From positions 1 to 64,000 of the IMG/VR virus record IMGVR_UViG_3300032242_002041: a DNA stretch of 64,000 nt. One strand, 5' to 3'. A program made the translations under genes and the position numbers. Shown here in pieces: positions 51,773-63,222 of this stretch. Each line of letters begins with the position of its first letter. The stretch's first letter is position 1. The notes under the pieces are model-generated. The model was not told the DNA's origin and ran no database searches. It saw only the letters and a program-made list of their open reading frames with translations.

Positions 51773-53971
51773 TTATCTAGCAGAGTTTTGCGCTTGCTTT
51801 TTGCTGTTATCATCAATGTTGGCTAATCGACGATCCATAGATTGTAGCGCACTGTTTAACGTACCTAAAATTTCTTCACTGTGATCTGTGCGACTAGCTT
51901 CTTGATTGGCTTTTGCTACTTCTTTTTCAGGTAAAGTGGCATTAGGTTTTATTGCGGCTAGCTTGTTGTCAAAACTGTTCTTGGGGCCTGCCAATAATTC
52001 TGATCGAGCATCCTGTGCGGTTGTTTTGGCTTGACCAGCCAATAATTCTGATCGAGCATCCTGTGCGGTTGTTTTGGCTTGACCAGCCAACAACTCTGCA
52101 TTGGCCATTCTGGCACCTGTTTCGGTGCCAGCCGACCGTTCGTATAATCTATCTACTAGTTGAGCAGCCTGGGCCGCTGTTTTAGCTTGACGTAATTGAT
52201 CGCCGGCTCGTTTTTCAGTATTTTTAAGTTCATAGTCAACAAACTTTAGTTGCTCTTCGAGCGTAGAGTCTTTTAATGTTTTGCCCATGACTCGTTCAAA
52301 ATTGGCCTGGCGATCTGGGTGCCACTGTGCAACTCCCTTGGCTTTGCCACCATCGCCCACAGCATTGATGTTTAAATTCTTTCCAGATTCTTGTTGTAGG
52401 TTCCCTACAATTCCAGCGGCTTGTTCTTTGGTCCAGCCGGCACTTTGAAAGAATTTCATTGCGGTGTCGGCATTTTGACTTGAGCCAGCCCCTTGCCCGC
52501 CAAACGTTTTAGCAGGGCCGCCACCTATGCCCTGGGTGGATGCTATATTTCCTGGTGCTACTCCAGCAATTTTGTTGGTTACTTTGGATAATGCTTCCAA
52601 TGATGTAGTAGCTGGGTTTACACCCATTGTAACAAAACTTTGTAGAGAATCTCTACTCTTCATCTGGTTAATACGCAGTTCAACCTGTGCTTTGGTGTTA
52701 GGATCTAGGCCTTTTTGTTGTAGCTCTTGTTGAGCCTTGGCCAAATCCTCTTGTTGTTTCATACTAACGTCGGTATTACGAGATAAGATTCGACTACGTG
52801 TTTCAGCATCGTAGACTGCGTCGTCCATTGCTCCGTTAAACTTGTACATGCTGGCCATGCCAGATTCGTCAAATTGTTTCATGCCGGCTGTTAGTTTATC
52901 CATTCCAGCGGCTGCTTTAAAGTTTTTATCTTGTGTGTACAGTGCAAATTCACTCATTCCCATGGTCATCATCTTGCCACTTGCACTAACATCTCCGCCA
53001 ATACTTCTCCAATAATCTTTTTGTAGTGCTGGAGAAGTTTTTAGCATATCAGACATTTTGATATATTCGTCGGCTAAATCTAGTGATGCTTGGTCTCCCT
53101 TTTTCCTTAGCTCGTAAATGGTTTGATTAAACGCATTTTCAGCCATGGCTTGATTTCTATTTTCTTGAAGGGCCTCTGCACTTTCGCCTGTGAGCTTGCT
53201 CATTAAATCTAACTGCTTGATATACTCAGCACTTCTGGCAGCTAGATTTTGTTGTATGTTTGTTGATGTTACTCCAGACATTTGCTGTTGTTTAACAAAC
53301 ATAGCTATACCACGATTTATATCATCGGGTGTTTTGCCCAACATCTGTAATGATTTACCTACATCACTACGTTGTATCTGTGAGGCTGCATCGGCAAATG
53401 CTCTGGTTCCGCTAGCAGCAGTGCCACCAAAAGATGCCAGTGCCGCACTGTTCTCTTTGATTATTGCAGTCATTTGGTCTAGTTGTTCAAAACCATAACC
53501 TAACTTCTGCATGTTGGCAGTAATTTCTGTCATGCCACCAGCAGCGGCTGCACCTGATTTACTTAAATCTTGATAGGCTTTAAATACCGCATCACTCTGC
53601 TTGTTTACTGTTTTAAGTCCTTCGGCAAATACGCCCACAACTTTGCTGGCTGCAAACAAGCCTGCTTTAAGCAAAGCAGATCCGGGAATAATAAGAAGAA
53701 GAGCTTCTAGTCCACCAGCAAGCGAATCTATGGCGCCGTTCATTGCCGACATGCCTTGCTCGCCCTTATACATGGCCTTGGTAAAGTCTACAACTCCTTT
53801 GCCCATTTTTGACTGGGCGTCGGCCATTGCTTTAGAGTAGCCTTTGAGACCTTTTTCGGCATCTTTCATGGCATTAGCCATTTCCTGAGTTATAGGAGTG
53901 CCAGATTTGATTGCGTTATTATACGCTTCAAATATGCCTTGGATTTCTTCCGGGGTGTATTGATCAGCCAT
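51773..53971 (-). CDS. Tape-measure/hub protein with C-terminal phage tail lysozyme domain; start revised to 53971
   Basis: Long Ala-rich helical region, then FFQSAGWTKEQAAGIVGNLQQES...GVAQW...LEEQLKFVDYEL...YER. Confidence 0.8.
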   Translation of the reverse strand: MADQYTPEEIQGIFEAYNNAIKSGTPITQEMANAMKDAEKGLKGYSKAMADAQSKMGKGVVDFTKAMYKGEQGMSAMNGAIDSLAGGLEALLLIIPGSALLKAGLFAASKVVGVFAEGLKTVNKQSDAVFKAYQDLSKSGAAAAGGMTEITANMQKLGYGFEQLDQMTAIIKENSAALASFGGTAASGTRAFADAASQIQRSDVGKSLQMLGKTPDDINRGIAMFVKQQQMSGVTSTNIQQNLAARSAEYIKQLDLMSKLTGESAEALQENRNQAMAENAFNQTIYELRKKGDQASLDLADEYIKMSDMLKTSPALQKDYWRSIGGDVSASGKMMTMGMSEFALYTQDKNFKAAAGMDKLTAGMKQFDESGMASMYKFNGAMDDAVYDAETRSRILSRNTDVSMKQQEDLAKAQQELQQKGLDPNTKAQVELRINQMKSRDSLQSFVTMGVNPATTSLEALSKVTNKIAGVAPGNIASTQGIGGGPAKTFGGQGAGSSQNADTAMKFFQSAGWTKEQAAGIVGNLQQESGKNLNINAVGDGGKAKGVAQWHPDRQANFERVMGKTLKDSTLEEQLKFVDYELKNTEKRAGDQLRQAKTAAQAAQLVDRLYERSAGTETGARMANAELLAGQAKTTAQDARSELLAGQAKTTAQDARSELLAGPKNSFDNKLAAIKPNATLPEKEVAKANQEASRTDHSEEILGTLNSALQSMDRRLANIDDNSKKQAQNSAR
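51990..52090. repeat. Exact 48-bp tandem duplication (GQAKTTAQDARSELLA x2)
   Basis: 51990-52037 is identical to 52038-52085. Confidence 0.9.
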
Positions 53972-53997
53972 AATTATATTTACCGAGGTAAGAAAAC

Positions 53998-54837
53998 ATG
54001 AATCTAAACAATCCACTTAAACAGTATTTTAGACAACCGGCAATCTACGTCCGACTGCCCAGTCAGGGTCAAAGTTACCCTGCAGGTGCTCTAACCATGC
54101 CACCAACAGGCGAATTACCAGTGTATCCAATGACTGCCATTGACGAAATTACCTATCGTACACCAGATGCGTTATACAATGGACAAGCCACAGTCAACGT
54201 AATACAAAGCTGTATTCCTGATATCAAAGATGCTTGGGCAGTTCCTTCTACCGACACCGATACCCTGTTAATAGCTATACGCATAGCCACCTACGGGCAT
54301 GATATGGATTTTGGCACTGTTTGTCCATCCTGTAGAAAAGAGTCAGAACAAACATTGGATTTGCGTAATGTCTTGGATTCTATGCGTCCAGCTGATTATA
54401 GTAAAACTGTACAGGCTGGCGATATGGAAATATTTTTCAAACCATTGAATTACAAGAATATCAATGACAACAACGCAATACAGTATGAAAATCAAAAACT
54501 CTTACAGATGTTGCCCGATACTGCTGTACCCGACGCTGAAAAAATGACAGCCTTGACTGCTGCTTTAAAAAGAATTACCGATATTACAGTAAGTGCAATT
54601 GGACAAAGTATTTCTGCAATAAAAACTCCACAGGCTTTGGTCAACGAGCCTGCTTTCATTGAAGAATTCTTAACAAATTGTGATCGAAAACTGTTTAATC
54701 AAATTCGTGATTTTATTATCAATCTCAAGGTTAATTCAGAAATGCAACCACTTAAGATAACATGCCCTGATTGTAATCACACATACGAACAAAGTATTAC
54801 ATTGGACATGTCCAGTTTTTTCGGGTCCGCCTCTTAG
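53998..54837 (+). CDS. Baseplate hub / tail assembly chaperone (gp26/gp51-like)
   Basis: LPSQG..YP, PMTAIDE, DTLLIAIRIATYG, two CxxC motifs and a C-terminal SFF. Confidence 0.8.
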   Translation: MNLNNPLKQYFRQPAIYVRLPSQGQSYPAGALTMPPTGELPVYPMTAIDEITYRTPDALYNGQATVNVIQSCIPDIKDAWAVPSTDTDTLLIAIRIATYGHDMDFGTVCPSCRKESEQTLDLRNVLDSMRPADYSKTVQAGDMEIFFKPLNYKNINDNNAIQYENQKLLQMLPDTAVPDAEKMTALTAALKRITDITVSAIGQSISAIKTPQALVNEPAFIEEFLTNCDRKLFNQIRDFIINLKVNSEMQPLKITCPDCNHTYEQSITLDMSSFFGSAS

Positions 54838-54863: not shown

Positions 54864-55052
54864 ATGGTTGATCAGATGGAAAAAGACACAGTTAATATCA
54901 GACGAGAGGCGTTGCAAATGGCCTGGTATATGCGTGGAGGATTGTCTTACGATCAAGCTCTGCAGCTCAGCGTCAGTGAGCGTACATTAATCAGCGAATT
55001 AATTAAAGAAAACTTAGACACCACCAAAAAATCAGGATTACCTTTTTTCTAA
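54864..55052 (+). CDS. Small hub-assembly ORF, probably also expressed as a -1 frameshift extension of 53998..54837
   Basis: WYMRGGLSY...LS..ER motif. The frame is open back to the T TTT TTC heptamer at 54816. Confidence 0.7.
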   Translation: MVDQMEKDTVNIRREALQMAWYMRGGLSYDQALQLSVSERTLISELIKENLDTTKKSGLPFF

Positions 55053-55558
55053 TGTTAGATCTAGCAACTGTAAAACAAGCGATAGAGCAGTGGATAGTAG
55101 ACTTCGTTGAAGTTCCACATCCAGCACTTGGTGGCTGGGCTCCTTGTCCGTATGCTCGTAAGGCTCGCCTTGAACAAGCCTATGAAGTAAGGTTGGGCAC
55201 AGACCCCTATGTTGACTTGCTGGAAATTTCTAAAACTGGCCTAAACGGTAAAAGTGTCATTGTCGTTGCTTATGATCCTGCACACTGGGAATACCGATAT
55301 TTTAGTGAAAGCCTAAAAGCTGCAAACATTGTGCATTTACTTGACCGTGACCTCCTGGCCTTGGAGGATCATCCTGGAGACCCAGAAATTGTCAACGGCG
55401 TTTCAATGAATCAAGGAACCTATGCCTTGGCCTTGGTCCAGAGTCTCAGTGACCTGAATGAAAAAGCCAAGGCCATGGCTCGCAAAGGATTTTATGCAAC
55501 GTGGCCAGAAGAATATTTACAAGCATTGTTTGAAAACCGCAAGGATCCTAGACTGTGA
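55052..55558 (+). CDS. DUF1415-like protein with PCPYA motif
   Basis: W...FVE.P...GGWAPCPYA and EDHP motifs. Confidence 0.5.
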   Translation: MLDLATVKQAIEQWIVDFVEVPHPALGGWAPCPYARKARLEQAYEVRLGTDPYVDLLEISKTGLNGKSVIVVAYDPAHWEYRYFSESLKAANIVHLLDRDLLALEDHPGDPEIVNGVSMNQGTYALALVQSLSDLNEKAKAMARKGFYATWPEEYLQALFENRKDPRL

Positions 55559-55989
55559 CTTATCAGTTTGCTAGAATACGATTAGCAGAAACTACCTACC
55601 AGGCCACAGTAGAATGGGAATATCTGCATGAGCCTAACATTGTACAGCTCAAAGACATTTACAGAACCTACTGCATCTATAAACACTTTGCTAGTGTTAT
55701 GCCATTATTTGATAGTCAGTTTACAGATCCTGATACAGATGTTGTTGGTTACAGAGAAGAAGGGCAACTAGTAGCGTTTAGTTTGATGAAACGCTACGAT
55801 GAGCAAAACGTTCTAGCCAGTCAGTTTGCATGGACCTATCATAATCCACGAACAAGACTAGGCATAGAAAGTTTAAAAACAGAGTGTGCTATCTATAGAG
55901 AACGCGGATTTAAGTTCTTGTACTTAGATCAAGCACATCTGTACAAGCAAGGCTTAGAAGGCTTTGAAATTTTAGGGACACTACAATAA
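55555..55989 (+). CDS. GNAT-fold protein resembling the arginyl-tRNA-protein transferase C-terminal domain
   Basis: YREEGQLVAFS...RLGIESLKTEC..YRERGFKFLYL...YK..L.GFE follows the ATE/Bpt C-terminal pattern. Confidence 0.6.
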   Translation: MTYQFARIRLAETTYQATVEWEYLHEPNIVQLKDIYRTYCIYKHFASVMPLFDSQFTDPDTDVVGYREEGQLVAFSLMKRYDEQNVLASQFAWTYHNPRTRLGIESLKTECAIYRERGFKFLYLDQAHLYKQGLEGFEILGTLQ

Positions 55990-56324
55990 TGGCAGATTTA
56001 TACACAATTTGGGCAAACAAAGAAGGCGACATCTCAGACCTAGACTGGACCAACGGAATGCGTAGCTTTTTTGATCACTTAGTTGCAGAAGGCAAAATGG
56101 AATCATACAGAATTACTCGTTGTAAAATGGGCTTCCGCAGTATTGCTGATATGCCTGAATGGATGATTTTAATGGAATTTAAAAATATGGCTCAAATGGA
56201 TGAGGCCTTTAAGAGAGTTGCTCCATTAGAAGGCGAACTCGAAGTGAAACATAAATCATTTAATCAGTTTGTTAGTGGAGACATTCAACATGCACTGTTT
56301 AGAGATTGGCCTGATCAATTCTAA
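55989..56324 (+). CDS. Small ferredoxin-like/dimeric alpha-beta barrel protein
   Basis: L.AEGK.ESYRITR.K.GF...PEW.I.MEF..MAQMD.AF pattern. Confidence 0.55.
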   Translation: MADLYTIWANKEGDISDLDWTNGMRSFFDHLVAEGKMESYRITRCKMGFRSIADMPEWMILMEFKNMAQMDEAFKRVAPLEGELEVKHKSFNQFVSGDIQHALFRDWPDQF

Positions 56325-56742
56325 ACGAACTTATATGAGATCTCTTAGAGATCTATGTCTTTCGTTACACTCAGACATGATTGTTTTTCTTTAGCATTAT
56401 CTAGATTACGCGGTCACAATTCACCGTATGCACGGTGAACTGACTTCTACATTATCTGAGTGTAGCTGTCATTTATCATAATGAGATTGTCTTACGACGC
56501 GGAGGCGGTTGACCGGTACCCCCTACTCAAGCTTCACATATCAACGGAACCCTAGTGACCCGACGATAAATCCAAGTCCTACGAGCATGGGTCGTATCTT
56601 TTTCAACGGAGCCCAAACCATTTGTTGCCTTAAGTTAGCAATTGCCTTTCACACGCAAGCCATTCTGGACCGGGTATTGCACCGTTCCTCCTTGCGAGTC
56701 GAGCATCCTCGACCAAACAGAGTGTGTTGTTGCCTGTCTAGT
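56325..56742 (-). ncRNA. Candidate large structured non-coding RNA downstream of the GIY-YIG gene
   Basis: About 10 nested or adjacent stems, a GNRA (GUAA) loop and several G-U pairs that work on the minus strand only. No credible ORF. Confidence 0.6.
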
Positions 56743-57171
56743 TTAAATTTTGTTTTTTATGTGACTTCCATGTATACGGCACACAATTTGTCCGTTATAA
56801 TAGTCGTCTGATTCTAATACTCTATGATTAAATTGTTCTCTGGCTTCAATATAACTACATTCTGCTTTTGATTTACAATAAAATAATATTTCTCTTGTAA
56901 AGTTGTCGGCGCCCTGCGCTAGAATATCTTGGTTGAGTTGATCGTTGCTTCCATAGTATAGTTGCCAGTCTGAGTCTATTTTGCTTTTTATTTTCTTACG
57001 TTTTTTGTTGCCGTTTTTTAATTTTACTACCTTGTATGAGGTTTTACTAAATTTTGCTAATTTTTTTCCAATATATTTTCTGCCAGTTATGTTATTTGTA
57101 ATCAAATAAACAAAGCCGACACAGTCTTCGGGTAGTGTTTCAATTTGTGTGTTTTCGTAAAGCCATACCAT
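56743..57171 (-). CDS. Minimal GIY-YIG nuclease
   Basis: GFVYLITN...KYIGKK, YYGS, FTREIL and YIEAREQF...YYNG motifs, plus a Lys-rich insertion. Confidence 0.85.
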   Translation of the reverse strand: MVWLYENTQIETLPEDCVGFVYLITNNITGRKYIGKKLAKFSKTSYKVVKLKNGNKKRKKIKSKIDSDWQLYYGSNDQLNQDILAQGADNFTREILFYCKSKAECSYIEAREQFNHRVLESDDYYNGQIVCRIHGSHIKNKI

Positions 57172-57189
57172 GGACTTATAGTTATCATA

Positions 57190-58200
57190 TCACCACTCGG
57201 TTGCATATTTTTCATCCACTTTCGTATCAGAACACTTGGTTTGACATTCTTGCCAACGAAATGTTTTTAATTCTGCTGTCCAAAACGGATCAGCTATTAC
57301 ATCTAATAAGGTTCTAGTATGTAGATCAAACTGTTCAGCCAGAGTTTGCCACTCACTGTTGTGCCCGTATCGGTTGGCTACCCAGCAACAAGGAAACAAT
57401 CTACCACGAGCGTCTATGTACAAGCCCTTGTTACCAATTTCACACAAAGGTTTAACGCCGTTGATCTCAGTCGCCGACTTGTACAATTGTATATTTTTTT
57501 CGTTTACACGATTGTTAATGCCACGTGAGCTTAACAGTATAACATCTCTTTCAAATCTATGCGACCCGCTGACAAACTTACGACTAGGTTCCAACGGATC
57601 ATCAATGCCGTAACTGGGATAAACACTGCCAAATTTGGTAGAACGTGTAAGTTGAAATGCATCCATGCCCAGTTTCGTTGCTAAAGATTTCATATAGTCA
57701 ACGTGATCTTCGTTGAACTTAAAGGCTATAGCGGCCCACACCAATCGACACTTGCTTACGGCTCTTAGAGTTTCAATTCCCAGCACGATTGATACAAAAT
57801 CACTGTTTACACGATATAGATTATTACTGGCGTTATCGTAACCGTCTACGCTAAAATGCACTGTGTCTTGATCTGTTAACACAGAGCCTAGCCCTTGCCA
57901 CCATTCAGGCTTCTTGTGTGAACCATTGGTAACAATAACTATCTGCACAGGTTTAATGCGTTTGATATACTCAATTACAGGAATAAGATCGTGTGCATAT
58001 ATAGGGTCGCCATCATCGCCACAGAATGTAATTTTCTCAACATTTTTTAATATAAAATCTTCTGTAAAGTTACGTTTAAAGAACGCTAAATCTAATTCAG
58101 TATTAACTAACCCATTGGGAACTTCCTGCCGGGCGCACCGAGGGCACCGTAAGGTACACTTACTGCTGATCTCAATATGGAAGTGCCAAGTTGCTAACAT
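57190..58200 (-). CDS. Radical SAM enzyme with C-terminal SPASM/twitch domain
   Basis: CTLRCPRC, FCGDDGDP, TNGS, FSVDG and C-terminal C...PCCW...CQTKC. Confidence 0.92.
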   Translation of the reverse strand: MLATWHFHIEISSKCTLRCPRCARQEVPNGLVNTELDLAFFKRNFTEDFILKNVEKITFCGDDGDPIYAHDLIPVIEYIKRIKPVQIVIVTNGSHKKPEWWQGLGSVLTDQDTVHFSVDGYDNASNNLYRVNSDFVSIVLGIETLRAVSKCRLVWAAIAFKFNEDHVDYMKSLATKLGMDAFQLTRSTKFGSVYPSYGIDDPLEPSRKFVSGSHRFERDVILLSSRGINNRVNEKNIQLYKSATEINGVKPLCEIGNKGLYIDARGRLFPCCWVANRYGHNSEWQTLAEQFDLHTRTLLDVIADPFWTAELKTFRWQECQTKCSDTKVDEKYATEW

Positions 58201-59488: not shown

Positions 59489-59973
59489 TGTGCAACCCTT
59501 AGATGAAATCGTGTCAATGGATGTATCCAATTAAACTTGTTGCCAAAATCAAGTCCACATGGTTGGTATTGTTCAACTGTTGCGTTTATGTTTTTGGTAA
59601 TAAATTGCTCAATAGCAGTGTCATAGTCAGCAGACAACGTGGAATCATAGCAGTTGGCCTGTGCCACATACTTGTTCAGTGACAGATAAATTAAGGATCC
59701 TGGAAGCATTTGATTTTTTATTATACCATTGATGTTGGAAACAAGATCGTCAAAATTAAATTCTTGTAACTGTATATAGATACAAAAATCTACCGGTTCT
59801 GAATCTACAAATTCAACAAAGTCAGCAAAGTAATCAATCGCGCCTATTGCTAACGCTTGTTTATAATTGCCACGATTGATTATATCTATCAAGTCTTGAT
59901 CCTGCTGTATACGGCACTGGCCTTCAAATAAACTCAATTGACCATCGCGGTCTGGTCTAGGATATGTCGACAT
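59485..59973 (-). CDS. Hypothetical protein
   Basis: 162-aa ORF overlapping the end of gp46; contains MLPGSLIYLS. Confidence 0.55.
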   Translation of the reverse strand: MSTYPRPDRDGQLSLFEGQCRIQQDQDLIDIINRGNYKQALAIGAIDYFADFVEFVDSEPVDFCIYIQLQEFNFDDLVSNINGIIKNQMLPGSLIYLSLNKYVAQANCYDSTLSADYDTAIEQFITKNINATVEQYQPCGLDFGNKFNWIHPLTRFHLRVAQ

Positions 59974-61720
59974 CGGTGTTATAACTTGTAAATCCGTTTT
60001 CTTTGACCACTTTGAGAATATTTTCTACTCGTCCAGCAAGTTCATCTCTATGACTTACTAGCCAAATTGACTTGTGTCGTTCGCGGCTCATCTGTTTTAA
60101 CAAGGCCAACGCACTCTCTACACCAGCAGTATCGAGTCCGTTGTCAATCATTTCGTCTATAAACAGGAGATTAATTGGCTGGTATAAACTTTCAAATACA
60201 TCACGGAATGCCCACGACATACTCAGAATTAGTCGATTACGTTCACCGCGGCTTAGGTTATCAAAGTCCAACTCACGACCTAGCTCTTCAATACCAACGG
60301 TTAAGTCGTTTTGGAATACCACAGTATGCGGCAAGCCCACGCGATCCAAGTAGTGTGTTAGTCTAGCATTTAGATAGCTAAGATTTTGTTCAATAATCTT
60401 CTTACGGATGAAACTGTCTTTGCTTGTGAGCAGTTTGAGTAGGAACTCTTGATGTTCTTGCAAGCGAGTAAGTTCATTAAGTGTGTCATATGAGACCTCC
60501 TGTAAGGCTTGTTGTTGCATTTCTTCAATCTGTTCTGCATAAGGATCTGTTTCCACTTGCTTTGTGGCAATCTGTTGCTCCAAGCTAGTTAATGTAGCTT
60601 GATGTTGAATAGCATCACTCTCTTTGTCATAGAACATCTTGGGCGGCTTACCTAACGTGCCCAAGGCCGTGTGGGCAGTCTCCAGCTCTGATAGGAGGGT
60701 GCTGTAAGTTGTGCCGCTCTCTCGAGCCGTTGCCAGATCACTCTGTTTCGCTTCCATAACCTGTTGGTGCTTACTATCGTGGAAGGGCTGACCACACGTA
60801 TGACATTCATGGTTAGCGAGCGTTTCAATTTCCTTAGATAGTTTGGCGACCAACTTGTCCTCCCGGCCGATGTCCAGTTTGACTCGTGCGATCTGACTCG
60901 ATAGTTCGTTGATATCCTTTCGCTTTTGATCCCACTCCTTGTGATCTTTATGCGCTTGGATCTCCACTGCAATGTCAATTGCCTGTAACGATTGTAAGGC
61001 TTTCTCAAGTTCTTTGATATCTTCGCCATGTTTAGTAGCCCATAATCCTTGTCTACGTTTAAGACTGTCTATTTGTTCTTCGATGCGTTTATTGGCTTCC
61101 TGTATTGCACGAATACGAAATTCTTCTTGCGTAATTCCGTCTTTGGTTTGTTTGTTGAGCTCTTTAATTCGGTCAGCACGTTCACTTAGCATGGTAATGC
61201 CAAGCAATTGCTCAATTATGGTACGCTGATCGTTGGCTTTAAGACTTAAAAATGGTTCAGTATAAGTGTTTAACGCCATGATATGTTTGAACATATCGTG
61301 ACTAAGTCCCAAGGTAGCTTCAATTGACTCTTGCGTTTCTCTTGAATCACCTTGTGCTTCGTCAGTAATGACTTGTTCTTGATTGTTTACATAGAATTTT
61401 AAAATATTGGGTTTACGACCACGCTCAATTTTATAAGTTTGATTTCCAGCTACAAAATCTAAACTGACCAACATGCCCTTGCCGTTGGTCTTATTAACCA
61501 GATTGTCTTTGCGAATATTGCTTAGTGCCTGGCCGTATAATGCATAACTCAGGGCATTTATAATAGTAGTCTTACCAGTACCATTGCGACTACCATCACC
61601 ACCTAGGTCCAAATTTTCTCCTAGTACAAGAGTCAGGTCGGTGCGATCAAAATCAATAGCCTGTGTGGTATTGCCTACACTCATAAAGTTTTTTACAGTA
61701 AGATTTTTAATTTGTATCAT
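59957..61720 (-). CDS. Recombination endonuclease ATPase subunit (gp46/SbcC/Rad50-like)
   Basis: KNFMSVGN, NGTGKTT, CHTCGQ zinc hook, LSRGE signature, FIDE and VSH motifs. Confidence 0.96.
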   Translation of the reverse strand: MIQIKNLTVKNFMSVGNTTQAIDFDRTDLTLVLGENLDLGGDGSRNGTGKTTIINALSYALYGQALSNIRKDNLVNKTNGKGMLVSLDFVAGNQTYKIERGRKPNILKFYVNNQEQVITDEAQGDSRETQESIEATLGLSHDMFKHIMALNTYTEPFLSLKANDQRTIIEQLLGITMLSERADRIKELNKQTKDGITQEEFRIRAIQEANKRIEEQIDSLKRRQGLWATKHGEDIKELEKALQSLQAIDIAVEIQAHKDHKEWDQKRKDINELSSQIARVKLDIGREDKLVAKLSKEIETLANHECHTCGQPFHDSKHQQVMEAKQSDLATARESGTTYSTLLSELETAHTALGTLGKPPKMFYDKESDAIQHQATLTSLEQQIATKQVETDPYAEQIEEMQQQALQEVSYDTLNELTRLQEHQEFLLKLLTSKDSFIRKKIIEQNLSYLNARLTHYLDRVGLPHTVVFQNDLTVGIEELGRELDFDNLSRGERNRLILSMSWAFRDVFESLYQPINLLFIDEMIDNGLDTAGVESALALLKQMSRERHKSIWLVSHRDELAGRVENILKVVKENGFTSYNTDVDIS

Positions 61721-63222
61721 AGATTCTTATTATACACGTATCCCATGGCTTTTGCAATCTCAAAATGGTTTTCTGAAAAGTTTTCATTTCTAATTTGATC
61801 AAACCATCTAACTCGATTATTAAACTTAGCACCATCGCTGTCTGGTAGCGTTTTTATAATTTCCAATACCTTTTGTATTTCGTTCCAGGGATGGTCTTTG
61901 AATTTGTTAAACATTAATTCCTTAGCGTCTTTGGTTAAATTATTCAATTCAACACCAGGGCCACGCACATGACTAACAAATAACGGAAACCCGTGTTGTT
62001 GTGCCCAGTTGTATACTTGATCAATGTAATACACGTTCATAATACTGATGGTAGGCATAATACTGATAGAAAGATTTGGTAAATTTAATTCTTTGATTCT
62101 GAGAATATTTGCCTCAACATCTTTCCAACTGCCGCCTCGTTGTAACTCAAACTGTTTTTCAACAGCATCAATACTAAAATGTATATCAACCAATTTAAAA
62201 TCTGGCCAGTAAGGTAATAACTGTTCGGGCCATATAGACCCGTTACTGTTATAGTGCAATCTGATATGCGTGGAGTGCCCTTGATCAACAGCTAGCTCTA
62301 GCACTTTTTTAAATTTTTTTATTAAAAATGGTTCGCCGCCAAACATGTCAATGTTTTGAATTCTTGGAAGCAACTCAACCATTTGATTAATAAAACTATC
62401 ACTTTCACTCCAGTTGTCTTGTAAAACCAGCGGGATTCCTTGATACTTGTGTTCCTCTAATGCAAACAGTGAGCTGCTCTCGCCGTTGCATACACGACAT
62501 TTAAAATTGCAAGTGTTATTAAACTTAAGATCAATGGTTGATATTTCAGGATCATCCAAAAACTTAGTTAAAAAATCTTTTTTTGTACGTTTTATATTAT
62601 GCATACGTATTGAAGTTAAGTTTTTATCTTCAACTTTCCAACAGGAGCTACATTCTGCTGGTTTCCTGCCAGCTAAGAATTCTGCCCGCAATTGTGTTGC
62701 AACCTCACTGTGAAATGCCTGTTCCAGCGTTGTAGTTTTAATATTGCCCAAACTTAAATTTTTGATCATACAACAAGGTGTAATATCACCAGTTGAACGG
62801 ATTTCTAAATTGGTCCAGGGTATTGAGCAAATAGTATCGGGCAGCATATTTGAATCAACCACTTTGTGGGTAGGACCAAGAGCAACTTCTTGAAATCCAA
62901 CAGGAATTGGATCTGTTGAAAACTGCCGGCACGATGATGCCACTAGATCCTTTAATTCAGCAGGACCGCAGATTAATATAAACCAGTTGCTAATATCAAT
63001 AAAGTTAATTGTTTCATACAGATTTTGCAAGAACTGCTCAGATAGGTGTTGCGAAGTGTAAAATACAATACGATCGTCGGCATTGTAACTCTCTTGATAT
63101 ACACTGTCTAGTGCTTTAAACAATCCATTAGGAGTGGCTGATAGCTTTCCTAAATCGTGTATCAGCTTGACATTAAATTTTTCTTTCAGTTGACTTTCGA
63201 GATCATCCGGCGAAATAATCAT
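61717..63222 (-). CDS. Radical SAM enzyme with upstream SPASM/twitch-like domain
   Basis: CSIPW...PCC...CSSCW followed by CNFKCRVC, FGGEPF and FSID. Confidence 0.9.
   Translation of the reverse strand: MIISPDDLESQLKEKFNVKLIHDLGKLSATPNGLFKALDSVYQESYNADDRIVFYTSQHLSEQFLQNLYETINFIDISNWFILICGPAELKDLVASSCRQFSTDPIPVGFQEVALGPTHKVVDSNMLPDTICSIPWTNLEIRSTGDITPCCMIKNLSLGNIKTTTLEQAFHSEVATQLRAEFLAGRKPAECSSCWKVEDKNLTSIRMHNIKRTKKDFLTKFLDDPEISTIDLKFNNTCNFKCRVCNGESSSLFALEEHKYQGIPLVLQDNWSESDSFINQMVELLPRIQNIDMFGGEPFLIKKFKKVLELAVDQGHSTHIRLHYNSNGSIWPEQLLPYWPDFKLVDIHFSIDAVEKQFELQRGGSWKDVEANILRIKELNLPNLSISIMPTISIMNVYYIDQVYNWAQQHGFPLFVSHVRGPGVELNNLTKDAKELMFNKFKDHPWNEIQKVLEIIKTLPDSDGAKFNNRVRWFDQIRNENFSENHFEIAKAMGYVYNKNL
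61729..61757 (-). promoter_or_regulatory. Sigma70-like promoter TTGCAA-17-TATAAT for gp46, embedded in the radical SAM 3' end
   Basis: The -10 box lies 8 nt before the gp46 ATG. Confidence 0.55.

Follow-up and report, generated by a model that had tools for sequence, protein, structure and literature searches.

The window analysed here, positions 1 to 64,000 of IMG/VR virus record IMGVR_UViG_3300032242_002041 (228 kb, 66% complete), belongs to an abundant uncultured T4-like phage and carries a run of five genes on the + strand. Beginning from its 5' end, the run contains a gene for a gp26-like baseplate hub protein (hub26, 53998-54837; Pfam T4_baseplate, 3.5e-15; phrog_150 'baseplate hub', 2.2e-16); a 62 aa ORF of unknown function (54864-55052) without a Pfam or PHROG match; and three overlapping ORFs we call O1 (55052-55558, 168 aa, ATG start), O2 (55555-55989, 144 aa, GTG start) and O3 (55989-56324, 111 aa, ATG start). 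The TAA stop of the 62 aa ORF overlaps the ATG of O1 (TAATG), the GTG start of O2 lies within a GTGA overlap with O1, and the O2/O3 junction is again TAATG. The hub gene, which we regard as context rather than part of a pathway, lies upstream of the cassette in nearly all related loci, and the 62 aa ORF is conserved between hub26 and O1 at 50-92% identity in these loci, including those with a longer form of O2. A terminator-like hairpin with a T-rich tail (56338-56354, + strand), located by consensus scan, closes the run. It is followed by a strongly structured stretch (RNA folding of 56320-56480 gives -43.7 kcal/mol, z -4.3) that matches no Rfam family.

The observation made in the preliminary description, of three translationally coupled ORFs following hub genes and encoding a CPYA-motif protein, a single GNAT domain with an ATE/Bpt C-terminal pattern and a small third protein, is confirmed. 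The genes are real: 2,735 and 2,793 clusters (90% identity) of O2 and O1 homologues, respectively, exist in metagenomes, and median dN/dS against relatives is 0.13, 0.07 and 0.065 for the three ORFs, indicating strong purifying selection. In GenBank phage records the region has no DNA match, tblastn finds no match for O2, O3 or two long-form proteins, and O1 has only distant singleton homologues. NCBIfam returned nothing for any of the three proteins, and PADLOC returned nothing meaningful.

O2, a minimal relative of ATE/Bpt transferases

O2 is a Cys-less protein predicted to consist of a GNAT core only (model pLDDT 85). Its best full-length structural matches (Foldseek and exhaustive VIA searches, Z 13-14) are the second GNAT domains of aminoacyl-tRNA transferases and other tandem GNATs, with top hits including MprF, FemX, ATE1 and Sbb17. 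Fold search alone cannot separate it from acetyltransferases, given Z 13.8 to VipF and about 11 to many single-domain acetyltransferases. At the sequence level O2 itself falls short of the Pfam ATE_C cut-off (18.3 bits against 25), but many of its homologues pass it (for example two close homologues at 33.5 and 49.2 bits). Among 144 representatives at 50% identity the family occurs in a short (~145 aa) and a long (225-270 aa) form, whose profiles align at 99.9% probability (hhalign, E 1.7e-31). The long-form profile hits yeast ATE1 structures (8e3s, 7tif, 7wfx) at E 5e-10 over the beta4-alpha3-beta5 region, whereas profiles of the O2 close clade, O1 and O3 against PDB sequences gave only noise. 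The conserved motifs LY..Y, FxWDY/P..LG and YLG..YK are shared with ATE1.

Mapping through these alignments to the donor amino-acid pocket of klAte1 (S255, S273, E277, Y289) and its catalytic Tyr-Lys pair (Y303, K304; PMC9351520) gives A88, S106, E110 and L122, plus Y130 and K131, in O2. The equivalents of S273, E277, Y303 and K304 are thus kept, including the Glu that reads the arginine side chain in ATE1, while A88 and L122 resemble Bpt (A168, L201). S106, E110 and Y130 are invariant in the close clade; across the short and long forms Y130 is invariant and E110 and K131 are at least 90% conserved, but S106 is not among the columns conserved at this level. The segment at 95-106 (Y-H-N-P-R-T-R-L-G-I-E-S), between strand 85-93 and helix 102-116, contains no Q/RxxGxG/A pyrophosphate-binding motif, with no residue fitting the motif register, and matches instead the ATE1 'P..xSLGK' pattern.

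O2 differs from ATE1 and Bpt in lacking the ATE_N domain with its Cys4 Zn finger, which contributes to tRNA binding in yeast ATE1 (PMC10115844), as well as ATE1's C-terminal region. It starts at the equivalent of the last ATE_N motif (..ARIxL), no ATE_N hit was found in 20 short and long family members (E<=0.01-0.1), and the long form's N-terminal extension has no conserved Cys. The acceptor pocket for an acidic N-terminal residue (klAte1 R80, Y25, Y87; PMC9351520) lies in ATE_N and is likewise missing. At 144 aa, O2 is much smaller than Bpt (about 235-260 aa) or ATE1 (about 500 aa). The family is unannotated, essentially viral and abundant in environmental viromes, with 6 hits in 185,579 species genomes (all but one weak partial on MAG contigs) against more than 700 stretches in IMG/VR.

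O1, O3 and linked genes

O1 (model pLDDT 96) is predicted to be a miniature relative of the thiolate-heme 'sandwich' enzymes (cytochrome P422/DUF6875, YqcI/YcgG). Foldseek against PDB found nothing at E<=0.001, but the exhaustive VIA search returned a single stand-out match, AglA (9ub3_A), a thiolate-heme arginine N-hydroxylase (Z 7.4, rmsd 3.7, 145 residues aligned, model 1-157; next hit Z 4.2). The element order inferred from O1's DSSP output (a1-Cys-a2-b1-a3-b2-a4-b3-b4-a5) follows the published AglA description of a four-stranded sheet and five helices (PMC12866846); this match is moderate and one of overall fold, such that an equivalence of Cys32 with AglA Cys44 is presumptive only. O1 itself scores below the DUF6875 cut-off (16.6 bits against 24.5), although 18 of 29 family members give DUF6875 hits (best 9.7e-7) and 5 give DUF1415 hits. 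Alignment with six true DUF6875 proteins (hhalign, 95.2%, E 2.7e-8) places Cys32 of the CPYA motif on their invariant VCPF Cys, the heme ligand of the xxVCP motif of the P422 tryptophan hydroxylases (bioRxiv 10.64898/2025.12.11.692455), and both O1 (as modelled) and P422 have an alpha/beta sandwich with four strands. This alignment must be tempered by its extent, as it covers only 45 N-terminal columns (the first helix, the Cys loop and the following helix) and the similarity does not continue past about residue 55. Moreover, the heme-propionate-binding Arg of RxGxVCP is replaced by Gly/Asn in the O1 family, the published substrate-binding motifs (SBR1-3) were not recognisable, and O1 is 75-100 residues shorter than characterised enzymes. 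Cys32 (in CP[YF]A), D106, H107, P108, N120, Y148, W151 and R163 are invariant in the O2-linked subfamily; Cys32 is invariant in all O1-family proteins, including singleton O1 paralogues, in which a YY..W motif is also conserved, whereas D106 and H107 are not.

O3 is a clear member of DUF6614 (1.1e-20; 74.2 bits against a cut-off of 25, residues 3-110), as are all 20 aligned homologues, and is the most conserved of the three proteins, being 64-92% identical (47% in one lineage) in loci where O2 is only about 30% identical. Its nearest Atlas clusters are 100% viral. The alpha-beta barrel-like fold suggested for it in the preliminary description rests on sequence alone, and only 2 of 20 members give a faint YCII hit. 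The only paper we found that mentions DUF6614 assigns it to the anti-Druantia factor Druad1, a 44 aa protein with no detectable homologues; we judge this a spurious label with no bearing on the 111 aa O3.

O1 lies next to O2 in 19 of 29 divergent O2 lineages (60% clusters), in four arrangements: upstream/same strand, downstream/opposite, downstream/same and upstream/opposite. In close relatives the slot between O1 and O3 holds the long form of O2 on the opposite strand. O3 lies next to the ATE-like gene in about 9 of the 29 lineages, in two or three arrangements. The linkage is not absolute, since about 10 long-form lineages have no O1 within 5 kb and O1-family genes occur alone in cultured phages. 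In several lineages a fourth gene joins the cluster, encoding a protein similar to L-arginine:glycine amidinotransferase (phmmer to PDB AGAT, 5e-10; also HsvA, SxtG and StrB1) with the catalytic GGxHC(x)T motif kept. In distant lineages it is inserted between O1/O2 or O2/O3, or abuts O2; it is absent from the cassette in the window, but this phage encodes one at about 115 kb. Only the C-terminal ~65 residues of this protein match by single-sequence search, and its Pfam ADI score is sub-threshold.

A possible tRNA-dependent conjugation and oxidation pathway

Our tentative interpretation is that the cassette forms the core of a phage-borne, tRNA-dependent pathway that conjugates and oxidises an amino acid. 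In this view O2 would take the aminoacyl group from a charged host tRNA and place it on an amine acceptor, the donor probably being arginyl-tRNA because O2 keeps the Glu that reads the Arg side chain in ATE1. O1, as a putative minimal cysteine-ligated heme protein, would oxidise that amino-acid moiety before or after transfer, most likely by N- or C-hydroxylation, drawing electrons from a host ferredoxin system, and O3 would be a conserved accessory. The amidinotransferase-like gene points to guanidino/arginine chemistry. The analysis itself establishes the homologies, the folds (as models), the conserved residues and the gene linkage; the use of tRNA and aminoacyl transfer by O2, arginine as donor, heme binding and oxygenase activity of O1, the order of the steps and the nature of the acceptor (small molecule or protein N-terminus) are inferences, in the absence of biochemical data for any member of either phage family. 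Within the incomplete 228 kb record we found neither a ferredoxin gene (Fer2) nor a tRNA-Arg. A complex prediction for O1, heme and O2, run without controls and with ligands unscored, gave a score of 0.00 against a mark of 0.32 and is no evidence either way.

The proposed logic mirrors argolaphos biosynthesis in Streptomyces monomycini, in which AMPn-Arg is made with ArgRS, tRNA and AglC, a GNAT-superfamily Arg-tRNA-dependent ligase, and is then N-hydroxylated on the arginyl guanidine by AglA (PMC12866846), the two genes lying two genes apart in the cluster (PMC8976061). The parts nevertheless differ: AglC (AlpF) is a 342 aa Acetyltransf_6/FemX-type tandem GNAT rather than ATE_C-type, AglA is a 243-274 aa YqcI/YcgG protein whereas O1 is closer in sequence to DUF6875, and the phage set has no phosphonate genes.

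The interpretation offered in the preliminary description, of a split transferase or a tRNA-dependent modification pathway, is partly supported. The two conditions it had named as refuting, a canonical acetyl-CoA site in the GNAT protein and a failure of the genes to co-occur, were both examined; the acetyl-CoA motif is lacking and the genes co-occur well beyond one clade. Its placement of O2 in the ATE/Bpt lineage without the Cys-rich N-terminal domain also held, as did the pathway idea. By contrast, the split-transferase idea is not supported, as O1 has a P422/AglA-like predicted fold and motif rather than those of ATE_N, and the long form of O2 carries its own N- and C-terminal extensions and still sits next to O1. 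Of the three outcomes it suggested (marking host proteins for proteolysis, modifying virion proteins or making a small molecule), small-molecule or conjugate synthesis now fits best, given the recurrent amidinotransferase-like gene and the AglC/AglA precedent.

Aminoacyl-tRNA transferases acting outside translation are known from N-degron pathways, cell-wall and lipid aminoacylation and a few actinomycete natural products, and our literature searches found no report of one in a virus. If the pathway is real, phages tap the host's charged-tRNA pool for chemistry other than translation, and these small, soluble-looking proteins would provide minimal versions (144 and 168 aa) of two otherwise much larger enzyme classes, useful for mechanism and engineering, and a new class of auxiliary or biosynthetic genes in T4-like phages of aquatic bacteria. 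A more far-reaching version, which we consider unlikely though not excluded, is that these are the first viral aminoacyl-tRNA transferase and the first viral P422/YqcI-type thiolate-heme enzyme, working together with the amidinotransferase and DUF6614 to divert host arginyl-tRNA into a guanidino or N-hydroxy-arginyl product that acts during infection, either as a diffusible small molecule or as a modified N-terminus on a baseplate or injected protein. In that case O2 would also show that the ATE catalytic core works without its Zn-finger N-domain.

Among alternatives, N-degron-type tagging, in which O2 arginylates or leucylates N-termini of host or phage proteins to mark them for ClpS/ClpAP-type degradation or to alter their function, with O1 and O3 as specificity or regulatory partners, is unlikely but not excluded. 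The known substrates of ATE1/Bpt are protein N-termini (PMC9351520), and the cassette is co-oriented with baseplate hub genes, so a virion or injected protein could be the target; however, the acceptor-binding part of ATE1 is missing, and the recurrent partners resemble enzymes typical of small-molecule pathways. It is more doubtful that O1 is instead a thiol enzyme or redox protein using Cys32, possibly with H107 and D106, in a module for acyl/aminoacyl-thioester or redox chemistry rather than oxygenation. The invariance of these three residues in the O2-linked subfamily, the small size of O1 and the missing heme-propionate Arg are compatible with this reading, but the loss of D106 and H107 in singleton paralogues that retain the Cys and YY..W fits a family-wide cofactor ligand plus subfamily-specific substrate residues, the Cys aligns on the P422 heme Cys, and the whole fold matches AglA alone.

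A purely structural or assembly role in the baseplate appears improbable. It is suggested by the position of the cassette after gp26 and the 62 aa ORF in T4-like relatives, and by O1-family singletons next to baseplate wedge genes in S-RIM32 and S-SCSM2R and next to a virion structural gene in HMO-2011. However, all three proteins show enzyme-like invariant polar residues, O2 keeps catalytic-site equivalents of ATE1, and the pair also occurs in other contexts, for example after thyX in one locus, and together with an amidinotransferase. Least likely is that O2 is an ordinary acetyl-CoA-dependent acetyltransferase with functionally unrelated neighbours, a reading compatible with its fold but disfavoured by the missing pyrophosphate-binding motif, by profile links that go specifically to ATE1 and not to acetyltransferases (the only Pfam families hit being ATE_C and, faintly, Acetyltransf_6), and by linkage with O1 that persists through four gene arrangements.

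Predicted identities of the three overlapping genes

The cassette lies in a 228-kb IMG/VR virus record estimated to be 66% complete, with T4-like structural genes that include portal gp20, a tail-lysozyme protein and a gp26-like hub. On the + strand, the hub gene (53998-54837) and a 62-aa ORF (54864-55052) are followed by O1 (55052-55558, 168 aa), O2 (55555-55989, 144 aa, GTG start) and O3 (55989-56324, 111 aa). The junctions are TAATG, GTGA and TAATG, as the preliminary description had it, and its observation of three overlapping genes in this position is confirmed. A terminator-like hairpin occurs at 56338-56354, followed by a strongly structured spacer (56364-56466, + strand); the 161-nt fold has a predicted energy of -43.7 kcal/mol (z -4.3, 0 of 200 shuffles as stable), and no Rfam family matches it. 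The ORFs are real genes: a word search found 2,735 clusters for O2 and 2,793 for O1, 232 IMG/VR stretches encode close O2 relatives, and median dN/dS against those relatives is 0.13, 0.07 and 0.065 for O1, O2 and O3, respectively. Every named database entry is labeled 'hypothetical protein'.

The Pfam hit of O2 itself to ATE_C is sub-threshold (E 0.0037, 18.3 bits against a cut-off of 25). An AlphaFold model built from 25 homologues (pLDDT 85) is a single GNAT domain, for which the best Foldseek matches are the aminoacyl-phosphatidylglycerol synthase domain of MprF (E 5e-6), tandem GNATs (VipF, MAB_4324), the aa-tRNA-dependent peptide synthases Sba18/Sbb17, ATE1 and FemX. By Z-score these are tied with N-myristoyltransferase and lie only 2-3 units above ordinary acetyltransferases, and O2 always aligns to the second GNAT domain of these enzymes; fold alone therefore does not decide the question. 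Sequence profiles do decide it. An exhaustive profile search found 144 representatives at 50% identity, in a short (~145 aa) and a long (225-270 aa) form, of which several short and most long ones pass the ATE_C cut-off and none hits ATE_N. The short and long profiles align at 99.9%, E 1.7e-31, over 134 columns, and the long-form profile hits yeast ATE1 structures (8e3s, 7tif, 7wfx) at E 5e-10 and nothing else meaningful.

Chaining these alignments allows residue equivalences to be assigned. The klAte1 donor pocket S255/S273/E277/Y289 (Bpt A168/A185/Q189/L201; PMC9351520) corresponds to O2 A88/S106/E110/L122, and Y303-K304 corresponds to Y130-K131. E110, Y130 and K131 are invariant or nearly so across both forms, and S106 is invariant in the close clade. 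Retention of this Glu is the basis for our inference that the donor is a basic amino acid, probably Arg. The acetyl-CoA motif Q/RxxGxG/A is absent from the O2 sequence, as are a Zn-finger N-domain and the ATE1 acceptor pocket. O2 is therefore not a canonical family member, but, judged from sequence and model alone, it probably works like the donor half of one.

For O1, Pfam gives a weak DUF6875 hit over residues 9-48, and PHROGs gives two families of unknown function. DUF6875 has recently been described as 'cytochrome P422', cysteine-ligated heme enzymes that hydroxylate tryptophan, with the heme motif RxGxVCP (bioRxiv 10.64898/2025.12.11.692455). A model from 29 diverse homologues is very confident (pLDDT 96). 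Foldseek found nothing for it at E<=0.001, but an exhaustive VIA search gave one stand-out, AglA (9ub3_A), with Z 7.4 over 145 residues covering model residues 1-157, the next hit being at Z 4.2. AglA is a YqcI/YcgG thiolate-heme enzyme that N-hydroxylates the guanidine of an arginine conjugate, and has a four-stranded sheet sandwiched by five helices with Cys44 as the axial ligand (PMC12866846). The element order inferred from the DSSP output for the O1 model follows that description, with Cys32 in the loop before helix 2.

Six true DUF6875 proteins were retrieved from bacterial genomes and aligned; hhalign of these against the O1 family gives 95.2%, E 2.7e-8, over 45 columns, placing the PCPYA of O1 on their VCPF, and 18 of 29 O1-family members hit DUF6875 individually. 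Cys32 and a YY..W motif are conserved in every O1-family protein, while the D106-H107-P108 motif is conserved only in the O1 copies that are linked to O2, and is absent from singleton paralogues in this genome (at about 108 kb) and in HMO-2011, S-RIM32 and S-SCSM2R. That pattern fits a family-wide cofactor ligand plus subfamily-specific substrate residues better than it fits a Cys-His-Asp triad. Heme binding by O1 is itself an inference, tempered by the lack of conservation of the propionate-binding Arg of P422, and by the size of O1, which is much smaller than any characterised enzyme of this type.

O3 is a full-length DUF6614 protein whose nearest Atlas clusters are all viral. It is strikingly conserved, at 64-92% identity (one lineage 47%) in loci where O2 is only about 30% identical. 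The only literature mention of DUF6614 concerns a 44-aa protein and is not informative.

Gene linkage across divergent lineages

In the 80 close loci the order O1-O2-O3 is constant wherever the contig allows it to be seen. Because this could be mere inheritance, distant homologues were also considered. Two divergent short-form lineages (O2 41-46% identical) again have an O1 homologue directly upstream; in a divergent lineage represented by Logan contigs (loci L085/L086) the O1-O2 pair directly follows a thyX (Thy1) gene, and the O1 motif is ACAFA instead of PCPYA. The long form occurs in 487 IMG/VR stretches. Iterative searches over all locus ORFs, with O2 clustered at 60% identity, gave 29 lineages, in 19 of which O1 is adjacent, in four arrangements (upstream/same strand, downstream/opposite, downstream/same and upstream/opposite), with O3 nearby in about 9. 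In T4-like relatives the layout is hub26, 62-aa ORF, O1, a long ATE-like gene on the opposite strand, and O3, such that the slot between O1 and O3 holds either form in either orientation. In one group of loci (L096-L131) O3 stays about 90% identical to the window's copy while the ATE-like gene between O1 and O3 is the long form on the opposite strand (~30% identical), suggesting that the transferase gene was replaced in situ.

The ~1.1-kb insertions seen in some close loci, between O1/O2 or between O2/O3, all encode the same ~377-aa protein, which hits L-arginine:glycine amidinotransferase (5e-10), HsvA, SxtG and StrB1 in the PDB and keeps the catalytic GGxHC motif. The same gene abuts the ATE-like gene in distant short-form loci (L082/83) and in several long-form lineages (loci L087-89, L093, L095, L139, L140, L144, L159 and L170). 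A 30%-identical copy lies at 114.6-115.6 kb of this phage's own record, within a second biosynthetic-looking cluster (106000-118000 of the record, outside the window) that holds the amidinotransferase-like gene (341 aa, GGISCCT), an O1 paralogue (177 aa, PCPYA kept, DHP lost), a NodU/CmcH-type carbamoyltransferase (484 aa), three radical SAM proteins (one with SPASM) and several unknowns.

The ATE-like family is essentially viral. A pattern scan of one genome for each of 185,579 prokaryote species gave six hits, all on MAG contigs except one weak partial match, and GenBank phages gave none.

A proposed tRNA-dependent pathway

The closest functional precedent is argolaphos biosynthesis, in which AMPn-Arg is made enzymatically from arginine, ATP, ArgRS, tRNA and AglC, and AglA then hydroxylates the arginyl guanidine (PMC12866846). 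In the gene cluster the YqcI/YcgG protein and a GNAT annotated as an aminoacyl-tRNA ligase lie two genes apart (PMC8976061). The phage set repeats this logic with minimal proteins of related but different families and adds an arginine amidinotransferase. Three independent hints point to arginine or guanidine chemistry: the retained ATE1 Glu, the AglA-like predicted fold, and the amidinotransferase.

We therefore propose that O2 transfers an aminoacyl group, probably arginyl, from host aa-tRNA to an amine acceptor, that O1 oxidises the amino-acid moiety using host redox partners, and that O3 has an accessory role. Whereas the family relationships and gene linkage are results of the analysis, aminoacyl transfer, the donor, heme binding and oxidation are inferred from them. 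The model fixes neither the order of the steps nor the biological purpose, and it admits a small molecule or a protein N-terminus as acceptor; the position in the baseplate hub operon keeps a virion-protein target possible. A complex prediction for O1 + heme + O2 gave no verdict. We hold the general mechanism only tentatively, and arginine as the donor more doubtfully still. The reading offered in the preliminary description, of a split transferase or a tRNA-dependent modification pathway, is supported in part: the pathway idea holds, and the split-enzyme idea does not. Although the two-enzyme logic is already known, the version proposed here is phage-specific and is built from unusually small members of the ATE and P422/YqcI lineages.

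Other features of the phage genome

ARAGORN finds ten tRNA genes (Thr, Ser, Leu, Cys, Trp, Gly, Asn, Glu, Tyr, Met) and a tmRNA-like gene at 135500-159000 of the record, outside the window, and no tRNA-Arg in the 66%-complete record. Upstream of the cassette, 51773-54016 (- strand) encodes a 747-aa protein with a phage tail lysozyme domain and an internal near-perfect tandem repeat (…ARSELLAGQAKTTAQD… twice); the start of this protein overlaps the divergent hub gene by 19 nt. A SegE-type GIY-YIG homing endonuclease (56743-57171, - strand; Pfam 4.9e-32) is conserved downstream of O3 in most relatives, at variable distance. Two radical SAM proteins (57190-58200 and 61717-63222, both - strand), the second with a SPASM domain, flank three ORFs with no family match (252, 192 and 162 aa) and a gp46/SMC-like ATPase (59957-61720).
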